Virus record (IMG/VR): IMGVR_UViG_3300028920_000022
Span: 186,001 to 250,000 of that record
Direction: 5' to 3' (one strand)
DNA: 64,000 nucleotides
Below, one piece after another: positions 8,279 through 34,156 of this stretch. Both the position numbers and the translations under genes were made by a program. How positions within the stretch are numbered: the first letter of the stretch is position 1; every line of letters begins with the position of its first letter. The notes beneath the pieces were generated by a model. It was not told where the DNA came from. It was given only the letters and a program-made list of their open reading frames with translations, and did no database searches.

Positions 8279-8593
8279 ATGCAGGCAATTACGAATGAAT
8301 CTGATTTTAATATTGACTCTGGTTTAGTAGCAGTAAAGTTTTGGGCGGCGTGGTGTGCCCCATGTAAAAGGATGGAGCCAGTTATTAGAAAAATGGAATC
8401 AGAATTCGAGAAAGTTAAGTTTATATCTATAGATATAGATCAGGTGCCAGTAATTGCGCAAAAATACCGAATAAGAGGGCTTCCTTCCTTATTATTATTC
8501 AAAAATGGGCATGAAGTTAACAGAATTAATGGATTAGTTTTGACGAGTCCGCTACGAAAGGCATTTAAAGATTTAGCAAAAGAAGAAGACTAG
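8279..8593 (+). CDS. trxA: thioredoxin
   Basis: VKFWAAWCAPCKRM active site; IRGLPSLLLFKNG cis-Pro loop. Confidence 0.93.
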   Translation: MQAITNESDFNIDSGLVAVKFWAAWCAPCKRMEPVIRKMESEFEKVKFISIDIDQVPVIAQKYRIRGLPSLLLFKNGHEVNRINGLVLTSPLRKAFKDLAKEED

Positions 8594-8622
8594 TGTTATA
8601 TAGCAAGACTAGGAGCTAAAAT

Positions 8623-8919
8623 ATGCCAAAACAACAGACAGAAGCAGACAAAATCTGGGATGAAATAAAGGATTTACCTATTTCTATGTTCACTTTACCT
8701 GGACAAAAGGTCAGTGATCATTTGGAAAAGCTTGAGGTTCCGGGAAATGAGCTGTATGTGCGACTTGTCTCTAGCGCTGTAATGGGTTCATTAGAGGAAG
8801 CTATTGGAGATAAATACGCAGTAGAACAGGCAGAGAAGTATACTATCATCAAGCGAGCCAATAAGGTAGTTATAGATGAGCCGGGTCCTCAACAGTATGT
8901 GCGACGGCGTGCACGCTAA
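8623..8919 (+). CDS. hypothetical protein
   Basis: AGGAG SD plus ATG ORF. Confidence 0.65.
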   Translation: MPKQQTEADKIWDEIKDLPISMFTLPGQKVSDHLEKLEVPGNELYVRLVSSAVMGSLEEAIGDKYAVEQAEKYTIIKRANKVVIDEPGPQQYVRRRAR

Positions 8920-8934
8920 TCGTATTTCTACACT

Positions 8935-9393
8935 GTGTCGAATGATAATAACGAAGATCTGTACGTTATTTTAGGATGCTTTGGAAGAGTAGACGATGGT
9001 TTTGTAAGTTGTCCAGGGATTGAAAATAAGATATTAAAGGTTGGTGATCATATAGAGAATCATAATGAAATGATGGATTATTTCGATAGTTGTCGCCTGT
9101 TTGATAGGGCAATGTTCGAATATTCTGCAATCCGGCATTTCATTCATAATTTACAAGATAGATTCGATCAAATAGCTGCCGGAAAACGGCTTTGGTCAGA
9201 AAAGCAATATACGCTCTATCAAAAATTTATTATAGATCATAGACTTTGTGGTCTATATTTAAGATTAGATTTAGATATACCAGTCAGTGAACCAGTTGTT
9301 GAAGAAAAGGCGGTAAGGATTAAGGCACAAAGCAAGTGTTTGATTAGTCCTCCGCAGATTAATCTTCGGTTAATACGGGGTCACAAAAGGTAG
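8935..9393 (+). CDS. hypothetical protein
   Basis: GTG ORF filling the gene array. Confidence 0.55.
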   Translation: MSNDNNEDLYVILGCFGRVDDGFVSCPGIENKILKVGDHIENHNEMMDYFDSCRLFDRAMFEYSAIRHFIHNLQDRFDQIAAGKRLWSEKQYTLYQKFIIDHRLCGLYLRLDLDIPVSEPVVEEKAVRIKAQSKCLISPPQINLRLIRGHKR

Positions 9394-21163: not shown

Positions 21164-23830
21164 ATGGACTATGTAAGCCTTCATAATCATACCACATTTT
21201 CGATTATGGATAGCTTGATTAAGCCTTCAGAGCTTTTCAAGCGTGCGAAAGAGTTAGGACAACCCGCAATTGCCGTAACCGATCATGGTACGTGTGCAGG
21301 TTTGTGGGATTGTCTAAAGCTATCTCGCAGTACCGGTGTAAAACTGATCGCCGGGTGTGAGATGTATTTTGTAGATGATGTAAAAGATACTGATGCCAGA
21401 TTACGACATATTGTACTTTTAGCCAAGAACGCAGAGGGTTATAAGAATTTATTAACCTTGGTTAAAGCAGGTTTCGATAATAACATCATAGCAATGCAAA
21501 AAGTTTTTCCCCGCGTTGATTGGGAAATATTGGAAAAATATAGCTCAGGTTTAATTTGTACTACTGCGTGTGGAAATGGGATTATTTCACAGCTTTTAAA
21601 TGACAAAAAGTTTGATGAAGCCAAGGCACAAGCCAAACGATTGGTAGATATTTTTGGAGACGATTTAGCTATTGAGCTTCAGCCACACGCAATGCGTCGC
21701 AAGGCTAACTTATATGGCAACGAAATAGATCAGACATTTACAAATCGTCAATTAAAGAAATTAGCAGACGAGTTAGGGATCAAATGTATTGTTGCCACAG
21801 ATGCGCATTATGTCAGACCAGAGCAACACAAGGCTCACGATGTAATGTTGGCGATTGGGTCTAGGCAGCCTATTTCTTCTGGTGCCAGGCTTAAGTATAA
21901 CGTTCCAGATTTCTATATAAAGTCTGACGAAGAGATTCTGAGTAAGCTAAAGCGAGCTTTTGGTGAGGAGTTTGCCAAGGAGTGTATAGAAAATACCATT
22001 TATTTTTCTGATAAGTGTGAGTTTCCTGATTGGATTGATCCAAAATATTCCAACCCCAGCGGTAAGGAGTTGCCCGAATTCCCTGTAAAGGATCAAAAAG
22101 ATTATGGCGAATTTAAAGAGTGGTTGGAAAAGAATCCATTGGACGGTTTGGAAGAAGATAAGGCGTATTTGCGTTATAGGTGTGACAAAGCTGTAAATGA
22201 AAGGGTGCCTGCAGAGAAACAAGCGATTTATCGTGAAAGGTTAGAAACAGAATTTGAAGTAATAGAGTACCAGGGCTTTTCTTCATACATGCTCATTGTT
22301 TCTGATTATTTAGAGTTTTGTAGAAATAATAATATTAGGCTCGGTCCCGGTCGCGGTTCTTGTGGTGGCTGCATGATTGCGTATTTAATAGATATACACG
22401 TAGCTGATCCTTTAAAATATGGACTTATTTTTGAGAGGTTTCATAATAAAGAGAAGTCGGCGCCTGATATAGACTCAGACGTATGTCCGTCACAAAGACC
22501 AATGTTGCATGAGTACATTCGTAATAAATACGGAGAGGATCATGTAGCGCACGTCTCTAATGTAAACACATTAACGCCTAAACCGTATGTTAAAGCTATA
22601 GCGCGCACTTTTGAATATGGCGGAGATCGCAAAACAGCTGTTGCTATTGGTGCCGCCATAGCTGACGCTATACCTGCCGATATAAAAACTATAAAGTCTG
22701 CTTTGGAAAAAGCCCCATTGTTTGCCGAATATGCGAAACGATATCCTGAATTGGTAGAATTTGGTGATGATATTTGTGGCAAAGCTGTAGCTTGGTCTAC
22801 CCACGCTGGTGGTTTAGTTATTTGTGCCCGATCTTTGGTGGGACTTATTCCACTACGACGAGACAAGGAAGGGTCTGTTTCTATTGAGTATGAAAAAGAG
22901 CGTGCTGAGGAAAATGGTTTGTTAAAGATGGACACTTTGGCAATTGAAACATTGCACGATATTGATAACACATATGCTCTAATTAAAAAGGCGGGCAAAG
23001 AGTTGCCACCAGATCCACCAAATTATGATGAATGTGATGTTGCCACATATGATATGATTAGTAATGGTGACACTTTTGGTGTATTTCAGCTAGGAACCAG
23101 TGGTGGTACTATAGATTTGTGTAGAAAAGTTAAGCCTAAGAATCTTGATGATCTGGCGGTAATTAATAGTTTAGCTAGACCTTCCGCTAGGGACATTCGA
23201 AAAGATTATATACAAACCAAGAATGGCGATAAGCCGGTCGAAATAATCCACCCATCTTTGGAGCGCGCATTTAGACCAACATTGGGTTTTGGTTTATATG
23301 AGGAATGTTTAATGTTCTTGGCTCAAGACGTTGCCGGTTGGTCAATGTTGGAAGCGGATCGTTTGCGTAAGTTAACCAAAGCTAAAGGTAAATATCCAGA
23401 GAAGGTAAAGAAGTGGGAAGAAGATTTTATTCAGGGATCTATAGATAGCGGAGTTGGTAAAAAATTTGGCAAAAAGATTTGGAGTGAGGTGATAGAAAAG
23501 TTCGGTGGCTATGGGTTCAATCGGAGTTTGTACTTTTTGGAAACTGTTGATATATTCTCTAGTGCTGGGAAGTATCTTTATAAAAAACCAATACAGGATA
23601 TTCAACCTGGAGAATTCGTCCGATCAAGGGATGAAGAAACTGGTGAGGACATTTACATCGAAGTAATTGGAAATTATGATCACGGTAAATTAGAAGTTGT
23701 AGAAGTAGAATTAAACACCGGAGAAAAGGTTAAATGTACGCTGGATCATAAGTTTAGGGTACAGGAAACTGGCGAGATGCTTCCATTATGGAAAATTTTA
23801 GAAGATGGATTATCAATAGTGGTAGGATAA
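21164..23830 (+). CDS. dnaE: DNA polymerase III alpha (DnaE), N-terminal fragment fused to the N-intein
   Basis: PHP motifs HNH/TDH/GCE/DAH; GPGRGSCGG, PDIDSD, STHAGG, KMDTL, EKFGGYGFNR; then intein sequence to the stop. Confidence 0.95.
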   Translation: MDYVSLHNHTTFSIMDSLIKPSELFKRAKELGQPAIAVTDHGTCAGLWDCLKLSRSTGVKLIAGCEMYFVDDVKDTDARLRHIVLLAKNAEGYKNLLTLVKAGFDNNIIAMQKVFPRVDWEILEKYSSGLICTTACGNGIISQLLNDKKFDEAKAQAKRLVDIFGDDLAIELQPHAMRRKANLYGNEIDQTFTNRQLKKLADELGIKCIVATDAHYVRPEQHKAHDVMLAIGSRQPISSGARLKYNVPDFYIKSDEEILSKLKRAFGEEFAKECIENTIYFSDKCEFPDWIDPKYSNPSGKELPEFPVKDQKDYGEFKEWLEKNPLDGLEEDKAYLRYRCDKAVNERVPAEKQAIYRERLETEFEVIEYQGFSSYMLIVSDYLEFCRNNNIRLGPGRGSCGGCMIAYLIDIHVADPLKYGLIFERFHNKEKSAPDIDSDVCPSQRPMLHEYIRNKYGEDHVAHVSNVNTLTPKPYVKAIARTFEYGGDRKTAVAIGAAIADAIPADIKTIKSALEKAPLFAEYAKRYPELVEFGDDICGKAVAWSTHAGGLVICARSLVGLIPLRRDKEGSVSIEYEKERAEENGLLKMDTLAIETLHDIDNTYALIKKAGKELPPDPPNYDECDVATYDMISNGDTFGVFQLGTSGGTIDLCRKVKPKNLDDLAVINSLARPSARDIRKDYIQTKNGDKPVEIIHPSLERAFRPTLGFGLYEECLMFLAQDVAGWSMLEADRLRKLTKAKGKYPEKVKKWEEDFIQGSIDSGVGKKFGKKIWSEVIEKFGGYGFNRSLYFLETVDIFSSAGKYLYKKPIQDIQPGEFVRSRDEETGEDIYIEVIGNYDHGKLEVVEVELNTGEKVKCTLDHKFRVQETGEMLPLWKILEDGLSIVVG
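23525..23830 (+). mobile_element. split intein N-half (101 aa, Ser1)
   Basis: Starts SLYFLETVDI (block A-like) directly after GYGFNR; KPIQDIQPGEFV; block B VKCTLDHKF (TxxH); acidic. Confidence 0.88.
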
Positions 23831-23831
23831 T

Positions 23832-25031
23832 ATGGCAGGATATACTCTAGAACAATATTTAGAAAGAATACCTGAAAAATACAGGAACAAAGTTAAATTA
23901 ATAAATAAATTTCAAGGTAAGAGAACAAAAGTATTATTTACAAATGAAGTATGTGGGTGTGAAAGAGAGTATTTTTTGGGCGTGTTGGTGTTGCGTAAGA
24001 CGTTTGATGTATGTAAACATTGCAGATCACAATATGTAAGTAAAAAATATTTTTGTAAAAGGTGTGGCAAAGGGTTTATTACTGAGGAGTGGTTTCTACA
24101 ACATGATAAGAAATGTCTTGCTAAATTTAAAAATTTAATTGAGGGCGAAGATTATGTTACCTGTTACATTTGTGGTTTTCAGGCTTTAAGTCTAGGTTTG
24201 CATCTTCGTGTAAAACATGGGATTGATCCCGAGGAATATAAAAAAGATCATCAGATAATTTGTAGGAAATCTTCCGATATCTATGCTAAACAGAACTTAG
24301 AGAACTCAGAAGTTTTTCGTAGTTGGATAAAAGAAAGAGGACCTGAAGCCCAAGAATATTTAAATAAAAGGGGAAAAGAACTTAGTAAATCGATCATGTC
24401 TAACCCCGAGGAGCGAAAACGTCGTTCCAAAGCCATGGCTATACTGGATCGAACTGAGTATATGAGAAAAAAGGCATCAGAAACTGCTATTAAAACTTCG
24501 GCACGTAAGGACATACAGGAGAAGCGGGCTGCACAATTGAAACGATGGAGAGATAATAATCCTGAGATTTTTTATGAAAAATGTGTTAGTAAAATGCTAA
24601 ATACTTGGCATAGTAAGCCTGAAACTATACTATTTGAAGCGGTTTTAAATTACAATGATTATGTATTTAAGCGTAATCAAATAGTTAAATCTGAAATATT
24701 TCCAACTAAATCTAAACGAAAACAAATAGACATTGGAGACAAATCAAAAAGAGTATATATTGAATTTGATGGACAATTACATTTTAAAGAAACACAATTA
24801 AAACAGCTTGAACGTGTTCAATTAAAAGATGGCTTACTGGATAAACATATTATTAAACATGGTTGGACATTAATACGTGTTTCTTATGATCAATTTTCGT
24901 ATCGTAAACGAGATTTTGGGTTTAAAAAAGAATGTTTGGAAAAAGTATTCGAGATTTTAGATAATCCAACCCCGGGAGTACACACTATCGGGGAGGCGTA
25001 TGACGCTAAAAAAGAGACAAACAATGACTAA
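23832..25031 (+). mobile_element. free-standing Vsr/DUF559-like homing endonuclease with several Zn fingers, inserted between the dnaE halves
   Basis: CKHC, CKRC...HDKKC and CYIC...HLRVKH fingers, basic helical repeats, C-terminal SKPE...QIDI...IEFDGQLH...KD...GWTLIRV. Confidence 0.75.
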
Positions 25032-25134
25032 CATTAAATCTGTTCGTTCCATTGGTAAGGTTCAAACATATGATTTGGAGGTTGATCATCCGGATCATCA
25101 ATACTATTTGTCTAGTGGCATGCTCACCAGCAAC
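25024..25134 (+). mobile_element. split intein C-half (37 aa, ends Ser-Asn; +1 residue is Ser)
   Basis: MTNIKSVRSIGKVQTYDLEVDHPDHQYYLSSGMLTSN|S: block F TYDLEV and block G terminal Asn. Confidence 0.9.
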
Positions 25135-26322
25135 AGTCACGCCACTTTCTACTCTATGGTTGGATATCATACCGCTTATCTCAAAGCCCATTATCCGTTG
25201 GAATTTTTGGTTGCTATTTTAATGAATAAAGTCAATTCTAACTCACCATCCGCAAAAGATAGCATAGCCAAAATTAAAGAAGAAATAAGAGCACTAAATG
25301 TTAATATTCTACCGCCAAACATAAACACATCAGAATTAACCTATTCAATTATTGATGATAAAACTTTGCTTACAGGCTTTGATGCTCTTAAAGATATGGG
25401 TAAGAACGCTATCCCCGAGATCTTAGCTAAACGTCCGTTTGATAGCTTTGAAGATTTCTTGCTCAAAACTGATGGTCAGAAAGTTACCGCCCCTGCCATC
25501 AAAGCCCTCGCCGCTAGTGGTAGCCTGGATTCATTCGGTTTAACTAGAAAACAAATGTATTTGTATGCTTCTGATATAAAAAAGAAAATACAAGTTCATT
25601 TAAAGAATAAAAGAGAAGGTGAGTTTAAATATCCTTGGCCGGCAGATATAGAGGAATGGACAATTCCTGAATTATACGCCATGGAACGTGAATATTTGGG
25701 AGAAGGTATCAGCGGAGATAGATTCCAAGTATATGGCGGATTTTTTACCAAGAAAGCTCCCAGTTTCAAAAAACTTCCTAAACTGCACCCTCCTCCACCA
25801 GATGATATGACGGAAAAAGAACAACGTAAATATACCAAACATATTACAATGTTGCAGGCGGAAGTAAAGAGTTTCTTTGAATTTAAGGTAAAAAAAGAAG
25901 ATAGTAAGATATTTGGCGAAGTAATGGCTAAAGTTGCCCTTTGTGATCCTTGGGGCAACCAAATGACTATGACTTGTTTCCCCGAGGGTTGGTTACATTT
26001 ACAAAACCGTGTTTCGGAACTATTGAATAATAAACACAAATTCGATACAGGGCTTGGTTTGTATATAAATGGCGAACTAAATTGGTACGATGGTGATATA
26101 TCATTAATATTTGGGGACGTAGCTCGTTGTTGTCCTGCTCCTCAGATGCCATCCGATAGAGATAATAAGAAGGTTACTATTCGTAGGTCCAAGAAGAAAA
26201 ACCCCAAACAAGAAGAGCCAGAGAGAGACATTCTATTGGAAGAAATAGAAGATGATTTGGTAGATCGTGGTTATTCCGATTTGGATGATGAAGATGACGA
26301 TGTACAGGACGGTTTTGTTTAA
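25024..26322 (+). CDS. dnaE: DnaE C-terminal fragment preceded by the C-intein (alternative start 25000)
   Basis: After the intein: SHATFYSMVGYHTAYLKAHYPLEF, ILPPNINTS, HhH GFDALKDMG, EREYLGEGISG, OB-fold region. Confidence 0.92.
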   Translation: MTNIKSVRSIGKVQTYDLEVDHPDHQYYLSSGMLTSNSHATFYSMVGYHTAYLKAHYPLEFLVAILMNKVNSNSPSAKDSIAKIKEEIRALNVNILPPNINTSELTYSIIDDKTLLTGFDALKDMGKNAIPEILAKRPFDSFEDFLLKTDGQKVTAPAIKALAASGSLDSFGLTRKQMYLYASDIKKKIQVHLKNKREGEFKYPWPADIEEWTIPELYAMEREYLGEGISGDRFQVYGGFFTKKAPSFKKLPKLHPPPPDDMTEKEQRKYTKHITMLQAEVKSFFEFKVKKEDSKIFGEVMAKVALCDPWGNQMTMTCFPEGWLHLQNRVSELLNNKHKFDTGLGLYINGELNWYDGDISLIFGDVARCCPAPQMPSDRDNKKVTIRRSKKKNPKQEEPERDILLEEIEDDLVDRGYSDLDDEDDDVQDGFV

Positions 26323-32721: not shown

Positions 32722-33164
32722 CAGATCGATCAAAAAATCGTAGTGATAAATATCAGTGGGTGCTGGTTGAATCCCCTTGTTCCCCGGAAATGTTGACTGA
32801 AGTGGCTGATTCTGAAGGTATCTCAGCTCAACTTAATCCCTGGGGCTATAATGAAGAATTACTGAACCTTAAAGATCAGCTGAAAGCTGCCTTCTGGAGA
32901 ATCGTTAATACCCAATTAACCCCCAGACAAAGAGATGTTTTGCAGCTGTATTCTAAGGGTAGAACTCAAACCGAAATTGCTAAGAAATTGGGCGTCAATC
33001 AGAGTAGTATCACTAAGAGTATTAACGGAAATTGCGATTATAGAAATGGTAAGAAGATTTATGGCGGCTCTAAGAAGAGAATACAGCGGCTAGCTGAACA
33101 AGATCCAGAAATACAAGCTATCTTTCGTAGGATCCAAGAAATACAAAATGACGACGATTTATGA
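32718..33164 (+). CDS. LuxR / sigma-70 region-4-like HTH protein
   Basis: LTPRQRDVLQLYSKGRTQTEIAKKLGVNQSSIT. Confidence 0.8.
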   Translation: MTDRSKNRSDKYQWVLVESPCSPEMLTEVADSEGISAQLNPWGYNEELLNLKDQLKAAFWRIVNTQLTPRQRDVLQLYSKGRTQTEIAKKLGVNQSSITKSINGNCDYRNGKKIYGGSKKRIQRLAEQDPEIQAIFRRIQEIQNDDDL

Positions 33165-34156
33165 AATTATGTACTAAATGTAAGCAAGAAAAACCAGAAT
33201 CCGCTTTTTCAAAAAACAAAAATAAACCAGACGGCTTGCAAGGTATTTGTAAAGGTTGTTGTATGGCAATTCTTGCTTCTGGAAAGCAGCATTGTCCTAT
33301 ATGTGATCAAGACAAAGATTTATCTTGTTTTAATAAGGCATCTAAAAGCCCGAGTGGGTATTTTTACTATTGTCGCGAGTGTGTTAATATCGTATACAGG
33401 CAGAGACGCGAGGAATTCAAAGCAAAACATGGGATTAGCGTTTACACCCAAAGGAATCGTGAGCGAGTAGCTTGGATTCGCTCAATAAAAGCCAACCAGC
33501 CCTGTGCTGATTGTGGCAAAATATACGATCCTAAATGTATGGATTATGACCATTTATATGGCAAAGTTAAATCTATATCTAGAATGGTATTAGCGAATTG
33601 TCCAAAAGAAACCATATTAAAAGAAATAGAGAAATGCGATTTAGTTTGTATTCTTTGTCACAATCGTAGGACCTGGAATCGTCAAAAACACCCTGACCCA
33701 TCCAAGTTTTATGCTACCAAACGAAGAAATATAGAGATTATTAAAGAAGCCAAGAAAGCTCCTTGTGTATATTGTGGAAAGATTCGTGAAGAATACAATA
33801 TGCAATTTGATCATATTGATCCCAAAGATAAGATTAAACAAATATCCGGATTGAAAAATTATAAAACCCAAACGCTGCTTGACGAATTAAAGAAGTGTCA
33901 AGTAGTATGTGCATTATGTCACAGGATAAAGTCTTTAGATGAGCAGTTGGAAGGCAAGTATGATTTTGAGAGGGAGGAAGGCACAAAGAAGAAATATGTA
34001 GGGGATGGGGAACAAGAGTGTGTAAGGTGCCATCAAATAAAGGAGTTTAAAGAATTCCATAAGCATATGAAAACGGCAAGCGGGTATAATTCCTGGTGCC
34101 GGGACTGTGTAAATGAGTACAGGAGGGAGGCTCGGAGGGCAAGTTTTGTTGTATAA
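33161..34156 (+). mobile_element. HNH endonuclease with two HNH units and flanking Zn ribbons
   Basis: CADC...DYDH...CILCHNRRT and CVYC...QFDHIDP...CALCHRIKS; CTKC and CVRC ribbons at the ends. Confidence 0.8.

Follow-up and report, generated by a model that had tools for sequence, protein, structure and literature searches.

How does a phage obtain an intact replicative polymerase from a gene that has been cut in two? This question is raised by a dnaE locus in a stretch of viral DNA of 64,000 nucleotides (positions 186,001 to 250,000 of IMG/VR record IMGVR_UViG_3300028920_000022; hereafter the window), which belongs to a contig of 458,729 bp from a marine sediment metagenome. At positions 21164 to 26322 of the window, dnaE, the gene for the α subunit of DNA polymerase III, is divided between two open reading frames (ORFs) that carry the halves of an intein, with a third ORF between them. 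A previous examination of the same DNA (hereafter the sequence-only reading) had described this layout as a naturally split intein with an endonuclease gene between its halves. We consider it probable, at roughly 0.85, that this large phage has a fractured dnaE gene, in which a split mobile intein with a homing-endonuclease gene between its halves would restore DnaE by protein trans-splicing.

The three ORFs lie on the plus strand, at the positions given by the sequence-only reading. The dnaE N-half ORF (21164–23830, 888 residues) comprises an N-extein of 787 residues (21164–23524), with PHP, Pol III alpha NTPase, and finger domains and GYGFNR at its end, and an N-intein of 101 residues (23525–23830; residues encoded by 23525–23827, followed by TAA), which starts with SLYFLE and contains TLDH. 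The middle ORF, a candidate free-standing homing-endonuclease gene (23832–25031, 399 residues), begins 1 base past this stop codon. In the dnaE C-half ORF (25000–26322, 440 residues), residues 9–45 end in TSN and are followed by SHATFYSM. The C-intein (25000–25134) has a homologous core of 37 residues (25024–25134), to which a start at 25000 adds eight residues, and its terminal Asn lies at 25132–25134; the C-extein (25135–26322, 395 residues and a stop codon) opens with Ser+1-His (SHATFY) and contains an HhH domain. The intein halves are 1.2 kb apart with the endonuclease gene in between. Because the three ORFs occupy three different reading frames of the same strand, a contiguous intein made by frameshifting is unlikely.

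Intein halves and the DnaE junction

To identify the insert, single sequences and family profiles were compared with known inteins. In a search of PDB sequences, the single N half matched the Npu and Ssp DnaE intein structures with an expect value (E) of about 1e-4, and the single C half matched these inteins with E values of 0.15–0.5, its best match being VidaL (0.0025); the Pfam models Hint and Intein_splicing gave about 1e-3 on the single halves. A region-restricted protein search yielded 70 clusters of DnaE N halves bearing the N-intein (46–77% identity), nearly all of which end 0–15 residues past the motif LSIVV. A profile of 67 N-intein sequences matched the solved cyanobacterial DnaE inteins with an E value of 1.7e-9, and a profile of 43 C-intein sequences matched the Npu DnaE C-intein with 1.9e-6. 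The latter alignment runs from Met1 to the terminal Asn (M1–N36), and the split point is therefore the same as that of the Npu intein. For comparison of a full-length intein, natural contiguous relatives were used; one contiguous family member, L075, matched DnaE intein structures with an E value of 1e-11 over nearly its full length and gp41-1 with 1e-8, and the N-half profile matched gp41-1 with 7e-4. As judged from homology, these family profiles settle that the insert is an intein, in agreement with the naturally split intein proposed earlier, and indicate that the profile matches of both halves are not due to chance.

All the residues needed for splicing are in place, namely Ser1, TLDH, the terminal Asn, and Ser+1. 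Intein position 1 is Ser in 59 of the 70 clusters, Cys in 10, and Thr in one, and it is Ser in the window (23525–23527). The block B motif TLDH (T72-L-D-H75, 23738–23749) aligns with TKDH of the Npu DnaE intein; its His is invariant, and at least 90% of the 67 sequences have the Thr. In the alignment of 43 C-intein sequences, M1, D17, E19, DHQ, and LTSN|SH are invariant (TSN|SH in 43 of 43). Cys71 (23735–23737), just before the block B Thr, is invariant in all 67 family members even though position 1 is mostly Ser, so that the intein is not literally cysteine-free.

Selection on the two halves was assessed from the identities at the first, second, and third codon positions, which were 0.65/0.77/0.44 for the N-intein (IntN), 0.73/0.83/0.42 for the C-intein (IntC), and 0.70/0.82/0.41 for the adjacent extein. 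This extein-like pattern indicates purifying selection on the intein halves, on which the constraint is about as strong as on the polymerase. Together with the invariance of the splicing residues, it suggests that splicing is likely functional. An alternative explanation is that the intein halves no longer splice and serve as a noncovalent clamp that holds two DnaE fragments together. There is a precedent in Aeh1 NrdA, which is split by an endonuclease gene, is free of inteins, and is described in PMC2677866 and PMC3045599 as functional without covalent joining; ligation of the DnaE halves is, moreover, a prediction here. However, the residues that serve the chemistry only and would not be needed for binding have all been kept across saturating synonymous divergence: no residue other than Ser, Cys, or Thr occurs at position 1, the His of TxxH does not vary, and neither the terminal Asn nor Ser+1 is replaced in any of the 43 C-inteins. 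We therefore regard the clamp as improbable.

The exteins are parts of one polymerase. Pfam matches of the N-extein were PHP (6e-42), DNA_pol3_alpha (2e-61), and finger (3e-32), and the C-extein matched HHH_6 (5e-19). On the NCBIfam full-length DnaE model PRK05673, the first ORF covers profile positions 4–752, and the third ORF, beginning at its residue 46, matches positions 752–1062. When IMG/VR was scanned with the N-extein, 20 loci besides the window's own were found, and in 12 of them the two extein matches abut without a gap; in these 12 intein-free viral dnaE genes, GYGFNx is followed directly by SH (AH in two). The gapless relatives show that the extein junction is exact. The joined exteins read FNR|SHA and restore the conserved FNxSH motif, which upholds the gapless junction of the sequence-only reading. 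The 12 intein-free dnaE genes are the empty-site alleles required by a mobile intein. A megablast search of the 5.2-kb region against 50,697 GenBank phages gave no match, and DnaE relatives found by tblastn had at most 32.5% identity, with no named relative among them. Related phage dnaE genes also have inserts of 1–2.6 kb elsewhere (L015:4683–6001, L018:7071–8120, L019, L020, and L021); these sit around N-extein residues 332–347 and around residue 400 and are putative further mobile elements.

In the mechanism that we favor, a mobile mini-intein would occupy the GFN(K/R)|SH motif, which is conserved in the Pol III α subunit. A free-standing homing-endonuclease gene would have entered this intein between blocks B and F, where intein endonucleases usually lie, thereby splitting both the intein and dnaE. 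Translation would then give DnaE(1–787)-IntN (101 residues) and IntC (37 or 45 residues)-DnaE (395 residues). The N half is acidic (net charge −9), and the C half starts with a basic stretch (+3 over its first 15 residues); the two would associate to form a Hint domain. Class 1 trans-splicing would proceed through an N–O acyl shift at Ser1, trans-esterification by Ser+1, and cyclization of the terminal Asn, by which the FNR-SHA peptide bond would be formed and a DnaE of 1182 residues released. If splicing works as predicted, the phage would depend on protein trans-splicing, as already suggested in the sequence-only reading, with no full-length replicative polymerase subunit formed in any other way, and a selfish element would have become part of essential gene expression, a principle established in 2009.

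Zinc modules and a Vsr-like domain in the middle protein

The sequence-only reading had called the middle ORF an endonuclease and pointed to known split inteins that flank a Vsr-like homing endonuclease. The endonuclease label was asserted without a basis, and direct searches find zinc fingers only; the predicted fold, the invariant residues, and weak matches of relatives nevertheless support a Vsr-like endonuclease. The protein is composed of three zinc modules (residues ~41–129), a helical region (145–257), and a predicted Vsr-like nuclease domain (258–399). A Ros/MucR-type C2H2 finger at residues 97–141 is found in 38 of 52 homologues, and a second C2H2-like finger at residues 59–93 and a Cys4 module are also present; the matches were Pfam ROS_MUCR (2e-5) and the Ros structure 2JSP (1.8e-6). 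Pfam, NCBIfam, and PHROGs gave no nuclease family for the middle ORF, only a weak RAP-domain match (0.043), and PDB searches with the middle ORF, the family profile, and the nuclease-domain profile returned zinc fingers or chance matches, for example, T4 gp15 (0.23). The predicted fold was therefore needed to assign the nuclease. The full-length AlphaFold model has a predicted local distance difference test score (pLDDT) of 93.9, and its best nuclease match is Vsr (1CW0 and 1VSR, probability 0.99). For a model of residues 258–399 (pLDDT 94.2), the top PDB fold match is Vsr 1CW0_A, with a probability of 1.00, template modeling (TM) scores of 0.60/0.55, and an E value of 0.012.

We found 131 homologues of the middle ORF, several of which are labeled "very-short-patch-repair endonuclease" by the Joint Genome Institute. 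Residues D300, E311, D313, H317, D333, and R349 (24729–24878) are invariant in the 51–52 homologues aligned, and G314 and F318 are also invariant columns. Relatives gave weak matches to RAP, DUF559, Vsr, and restriction-endonuclease models, of which those to RAP, DUF559, and Vsr are below the curated cut-offs. The EDxHD homing-endonuclease family, with the prototype I-Bth0305I (PDB 3R3P), is defined by a Glu/Asp/His/Asp pattern (PMC3239194). E311, D313, H317, and D333 fit this catalytic motif, as assigned by pattern, and the modeled fold indicates that the middle protein carries a Vsr-like nuclease domain with the conserved EDxHD residues. I-Bth0305I likewise has an N-terminal DNA-binding region and a C-terminal Vsr-like nuclease domain and belongs to mobile intervening sequences in phage DNA-metabolism genes. 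It lies in a group I intron and uses NUMOD/helix-turn-helix modules, whereas the window gene is free-standing in a split intein and encodes three zinc modules. The 3R3P sequence was not matched by single sequences or profiles, and the structure was outside the top 50 fold matches of the middle protein.

The middle ORF could instead encode a Ros/MucR-type zinc-finger DNA-binding regulator whose nuclease-like domain is dead; the sole significant direct sequence matches are indeed the zinc fingers, and Vsr and I-Bth0305I are not matched by sequence. On the other hand, the fold of the nuclease domain matches Vsr best, the six residues listed above do not vary among the aligned homologues, and relatives have RAP, DUF559, and Vsr matches in Pfam, albeit weak ones. 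In addition, the gene is placed exactly at the endonuclease site of the intein, and its repeated loss with 3′ remnants left behind (see below) follows the life cycle typical of selfish endonucleases. A regulator is thus very unlikely. As a homing endonuclease, which is the function we favor, the middle protein would read DNA through its zinc modules and cut it with its Vsr-like (EDxHD-type) nuclease domain. The presumed targets are intein-less dnaE alleles of co-infecting relatives, and repair of a cut allele would copy the endonuclease gene along with both intein halves.

Several points weigh against a fractured dnaE gene that splices and homes. On the single halves, the scores of the Pfam and NCBIfam intein models do not reach the curated thresholds (TIGR01445, 3e-4, and TIGR01443), and the intein-model match anticipated by the sequence-only reading was obtained with family profiles against solved inteins and not with the curated models; contiguous relatives are also under the Pfam cut-off (27.9 bits versus 35.8). 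In block G, the window and all 43 relatives have Ser in place of the penultimate His. This His is common but not obligatory, and active cyanobacterial DnaE inteins end in Ala-Ser-Asn. For the middle protein, PDB sequence and profile searches gave no nuclease-domain match to Vsr or I-Bth0305I, and the Foldseek E values of the fold matches are only about 0.01. Splicing, cleavage by the middle protein, homing, and co-transcription are what we infer from the locus and its relatives. The regulatory hairpin and late-promoter box of fractured genes are not convincingly present. Finally, the window comprises 64 kb (14%) of a 459-kb genome, and a second intact polymerase may be encoded elsewhere.

Relatives at the same dnaE site and known systems

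The N-intein profile, run against IMG/VR, recovered another 60 loci in which the intein occupies the same dnaE site. About 35 of them have the same endonuclease family between the halves, in the order N half, endonuclease, C half, and four more (including L081) have the endonuclease, with the downstream half beyond the sequence covered. Nine loci are still split without an endonuclease gene, with gaps of 47–278 nucleotides. In five of these nine, the final endonuclease codons survive immediately before the C-intein start, which indicates an origin by deletion. A remnant "PGIYxIGxxY" stands directly before the C-intein ATG, with a GGAG ribosome-binding site, in L041, L064, L069, L027/L036, and L034; the GGAG supplied by the remnant codons may explain why the remnant has been retained. 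Two loci have contiguous mini-inteins with a 10-residue linker. In L013 (IMGVR_UViG_3300036768_001520), a contiguous intein of 235 residues (8503–9207) lies at the same site in a DnaE ORF of 1396 residues, and its linker of 315 nucleotides contains an out-of-frame remnant of the Vsr-like nuclease domain (8840–9127, E value of 1e-6 against the window endonuclease); this locus looks like a fractured gene healed by deletion. Seven loci have other inserts, among them a Vsr-like ORF that is more divergent, ORFs without a Pfam match (661 and 685 residues), and a 3.5-kb insert with a TadE-like gene, and one remaining locus ends at a contig edge. The N-intein ORF reads on for 166 residues without a Pfam match and overlaps the C-intein ATG in L029 (2122–2619) and L032 (also protein P0133), where a domain without a Pfam match, fused to the N-intein, replaces the separate endonuclease gene. 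The halves are ~4.7 kb apart in two further loci, L050/L123 and L051/L124, and ~12 kb apart in L081/L138; these may be stages toward unlinked halves as in cyanobacteria.

Among the genomes of 185,579 species, the N-intein family was found in three short or binned metagenome-assembled contigs only, and the family is therefore essentially viral. No cellular dnaE with this intein was present in this set, which gave no clue to the host. Some of the dnaE genes that carry this split intein have a second one further upstream: L016 (= L068:49–1821) has a C-intein-like ORF start ending in VVHN|S, and N halves of ~1330–1365 residues (P0129, P0134, P0142, P0152, P0156, P0162, and P0180) contain an upstream LAGLIDADG intein (Pfam PF14528). 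The distant intein-like matches L083–L093 were set aside as unrelated alleles because they sit in other host genes, namely, RecA/UvsX-like ATPases (recognized by eye from translations), a giant-virus RNA polymerase, and a methyltransferase.

Dassa et al. 2009 (PMC2677866) defined the fractured-gene arrangement in 26 metagenomic loci, mainly of phage origin. The dnaE locus of the window is a complete example of this arrangement and not a new kind of system. Although the sequence-only reading rightly pointed out that fractured genes were known, it left unmentioned that the founding paper contains three fractured dnaE loci (DnaE-1, DnaE-2, and DnaE-3, from the Global Ocean Sampling), at sites that differ from the cyanobacterial one, and that the endonuclease is Vsr-like in about half of the loci, DnaE-2 among them. 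As these loci were already listed, our case is less novel than the sequence-only reading implied. Common to the window and the loci of that paper are adjacent half ORFs on the same strand with split-intein halves, a free-standing endonuclease between them, a phage-like setting, and, for dnaE, a site other than the cyanobacterial one, and the endonuclease/C-intein overlap in the window (8 or 32 nucleotides) falls within the 6–69 bp recorded for 15 loci (PMC2677866). The dnaE loci there are among the incomplete assemblies, the five complete loci being in other genes, whereas the 459-kb phage contig contains the whole locus, in which both halves and the endonuclease gene are intact. DnaE-1 is described with an extra intein part, similar to the upstream second inteins in our relatives. 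The paper also reports a hairpin upstream of the endonuclease start, often with a TATAAATA late-promoter box, and neither is clear in the window. Zinc fingers, present in the window endonuclease, are never mentioned there; the sole N-terminal DNA-binding motif reported is NUMOD-3, in two of the Vsr-like proteins. An intein-clustering survey (PMC4760082) does not mention DnaE. In Aeromonas phage Aeh1, nrdA is split by the endonuclease gene mobE, the 3′ end of which overlaps the downstream half (PMC2677866). This is likewise a replication-related phage gene split by a free-standing endonuclease gene, but there is no intein and the halves assemble noncovalently.

The best solved-structure match of both halves is the cyanobacterial DnaE split intein (Npu/Ssp; 4KL5, 2KEQ, 4LX3, 1ZD7, and 7QIL). 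The two share the host protein, the split point, a C terminus of x-Ser-Asn without the penultimate His, an acidic N half, and a basic start of the C half. The cyanobacterial site is ..EY|CFNKSH, with Cys1 and Cys+1. By contrast, the insertion point in the window is FNR|SH, four residues further downstream, exactly as the sequence-only reading had placed it, and the intein has Ser1 and Ser+1; its halves are adjacent, with an endonuclease gene, in a phage, whereas the cyanobacterial halves are at unlinked loci in a cellular host. The window intein thus lacks the defining features of the cyanobacterial allele, namely, the site, the nucleophiles, and the unlinked halves. The metagenomic split inteins gp41-1 (6QAZ), NrdJ-1, and IMPDH-1 also originate from fractured genes and have halves of comparable length, but they come from other host genes, show distant sequence similarity only, and use Cys1.

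There is a small chance that, of all living inteins, this phage family is the one most closely related to the cyanobacterial DnaE split intein, possibly its source, and keeps the steps that lead to a permanent split of the replicase. Different viral contigs have, at the one site, a contiguous mini-intein, an endonuclease-split intein, an intein that is still split after deletion of the endonuclease gene, and halves 4.7 and 12 kb apart. If this tentative idea is true, the shift of the site by four residues and the Cys-to-Ser change of the nucleophiles would separate the phage and cellular lineages.

Within the known fractured-gene arrangement, the Ser/Ser relative of the Npu intein, the zinc-finger Vsr-like endonuclease, and the many-stage family are worth recording. 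The split intein is related to the widely used Npu DnaE intein and has predicted Ser nucleophiles at both junctions, and natural split inteins without cysteine nucleophiles are described as rare (PMC11923092 and PMC12707363). A natural relative with Ser1 and Ser+1 would be useful where cysteine nucleophiles are unwanted, with the reservation that it keeps the invariant internal Cys. The endonuclease joins a predicted Vsr-like nuclease to zinc-finger modules. With at least 60 viral loci at one site and several stages of endonuclease gain, endonuclease loss, and separation of the halves, the family would permit a direct test of the gene-breaking model.

Start of the C half, assembly, and phage setting

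The C-intein of 37 residues given by the sequence-only reading is obtained from the ATG at 25024, which corresponds in the alignment to the start Met found in all 43 relatives. The start is ambiguous, because the first in-frame ATG is at 25000, with GGGGAGG (24990–24996) three bases upstream, and gives a C-intein of 45 residues. This Shine-Dalgarno-like sequence for the dnaE-C gene lies within the conserved "IGEAY" codons of the endonuclease C terminus, and no good Shine-Dalgarno sequence precedes ATG 25024 in the window. In the upstream regions of relatives (41 loci), the C-intein ATG comes directly after the "IGxAY" endonuclease codons, which are the source of the GGAG, and the ATG directly behind those codons in the window is that at 25000. 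Between the two ATGs lies a stretch of 24 nucleotides with ATGAC at both ends (25000–25028). It resembles a short duplication or insertion by which a basic leader, MTLKKRQT, was added. As the leader would be excised together with the intein, a C-intein of either 37 or 45 residues is compatible with splicing. The 3′ end of the endonuclease gene and the 5′ end of the C-intein overlap by 8 (start at 25024) or 32 (start at 25000) nucleotides, and overlaps of 4, 8, 13–17, and 23 nucleotides recur in relatives; as the sequence-only reading suggested, such overlaps may couple the production of the halves.

At the start of the endonuclease gene (23824–23834), AGGA (23824–23827) lies in the last intein codons and is followed by TAA, 1 base, and the ATG at 23832. 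Part of the AGGA region is paired in a marginal local hairpin (z score of −1.95, with 6 of 200 shuffles folding as well), and the sequence just before the endonuclease gene has no TATAAATA box. Folding around the C-intein start showed no significant structure (z = −0.96), and promoter and terminator scans gave sites not above the shuffled expectation. No plus-strand terminator-like site is present at either ORF boundary, the sole one being in the N-extein (22797–22812). Co-transcription is therefore the simplest reading, and the three same-strand ORFs are most likely co-transcribed. The G+C content is 0.30–0.34 over most of 23600–25000, compared with about 0.39–0.42 in the flanking dnaE, which points to a foreign origin of the insert.

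The possibility of misassembly, raised in the sequence-only reading, was addressed with Logan, an independent assembly of a marine sediment run that is probably the source sample. One contig of 146 kb spans 21164–26322 with 0 differences and a word depth of 24; neither joints nor loose ends occur at the borders of the genes. The assembly of the dnaE locus is thus correct, and stronger independent support comes from the many other metagenomes in which the architecture recurs. Although the window is 14% of the contig and the best read support comes from the probable source sample, a decaying nonfunctional dnaE with another polymerase in use, or an assembly artifact, is scarcely credible, given that the three ORFs are intact with all conserved domains present, that dozens of independently assembled contigs from other samples have the architecture, that a second assembler gives the identical stretch, and that a search of the 64-kb window found no further copies of the endonuclease or of DnaE-like or intein-like sequence.

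A salt-marsh run (X2) and another sediment run (X3) contained fragments at 95–100% identity, part of the endonuclease gene included. X2 had 1 difference in 282 nucleotides inside the endonuclease gene (24322–24603) and 21 differences in 776 nucleotides of the flanking dnaE (22794–22944 and 25246–26089), a pattern that is compatible, in this small data set, with a recent spread of the endonuclease gene. In X3 (record 15), a contig of 156 nucleotides matches the N-extein at 23375–23523, with 7 nucleotides left over; the match ends one base short of the extein/intein junction, and this very short contig may represent an allele with an empty or different site.

Other genes in the window fit a phage setting, including those for SbcCD, an exonuclease, a UvsX-like recombinase, a terminase, and a portal protein. 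A free-standing ORF of 331 residues at 33161–34156 on the plus strand has PHROG matches to HNH endonuclease (1.4e-46), endonuclease VII, and Lar-like restriction alleviation protein and is probably another mobile nuclease gene of the same replication module.

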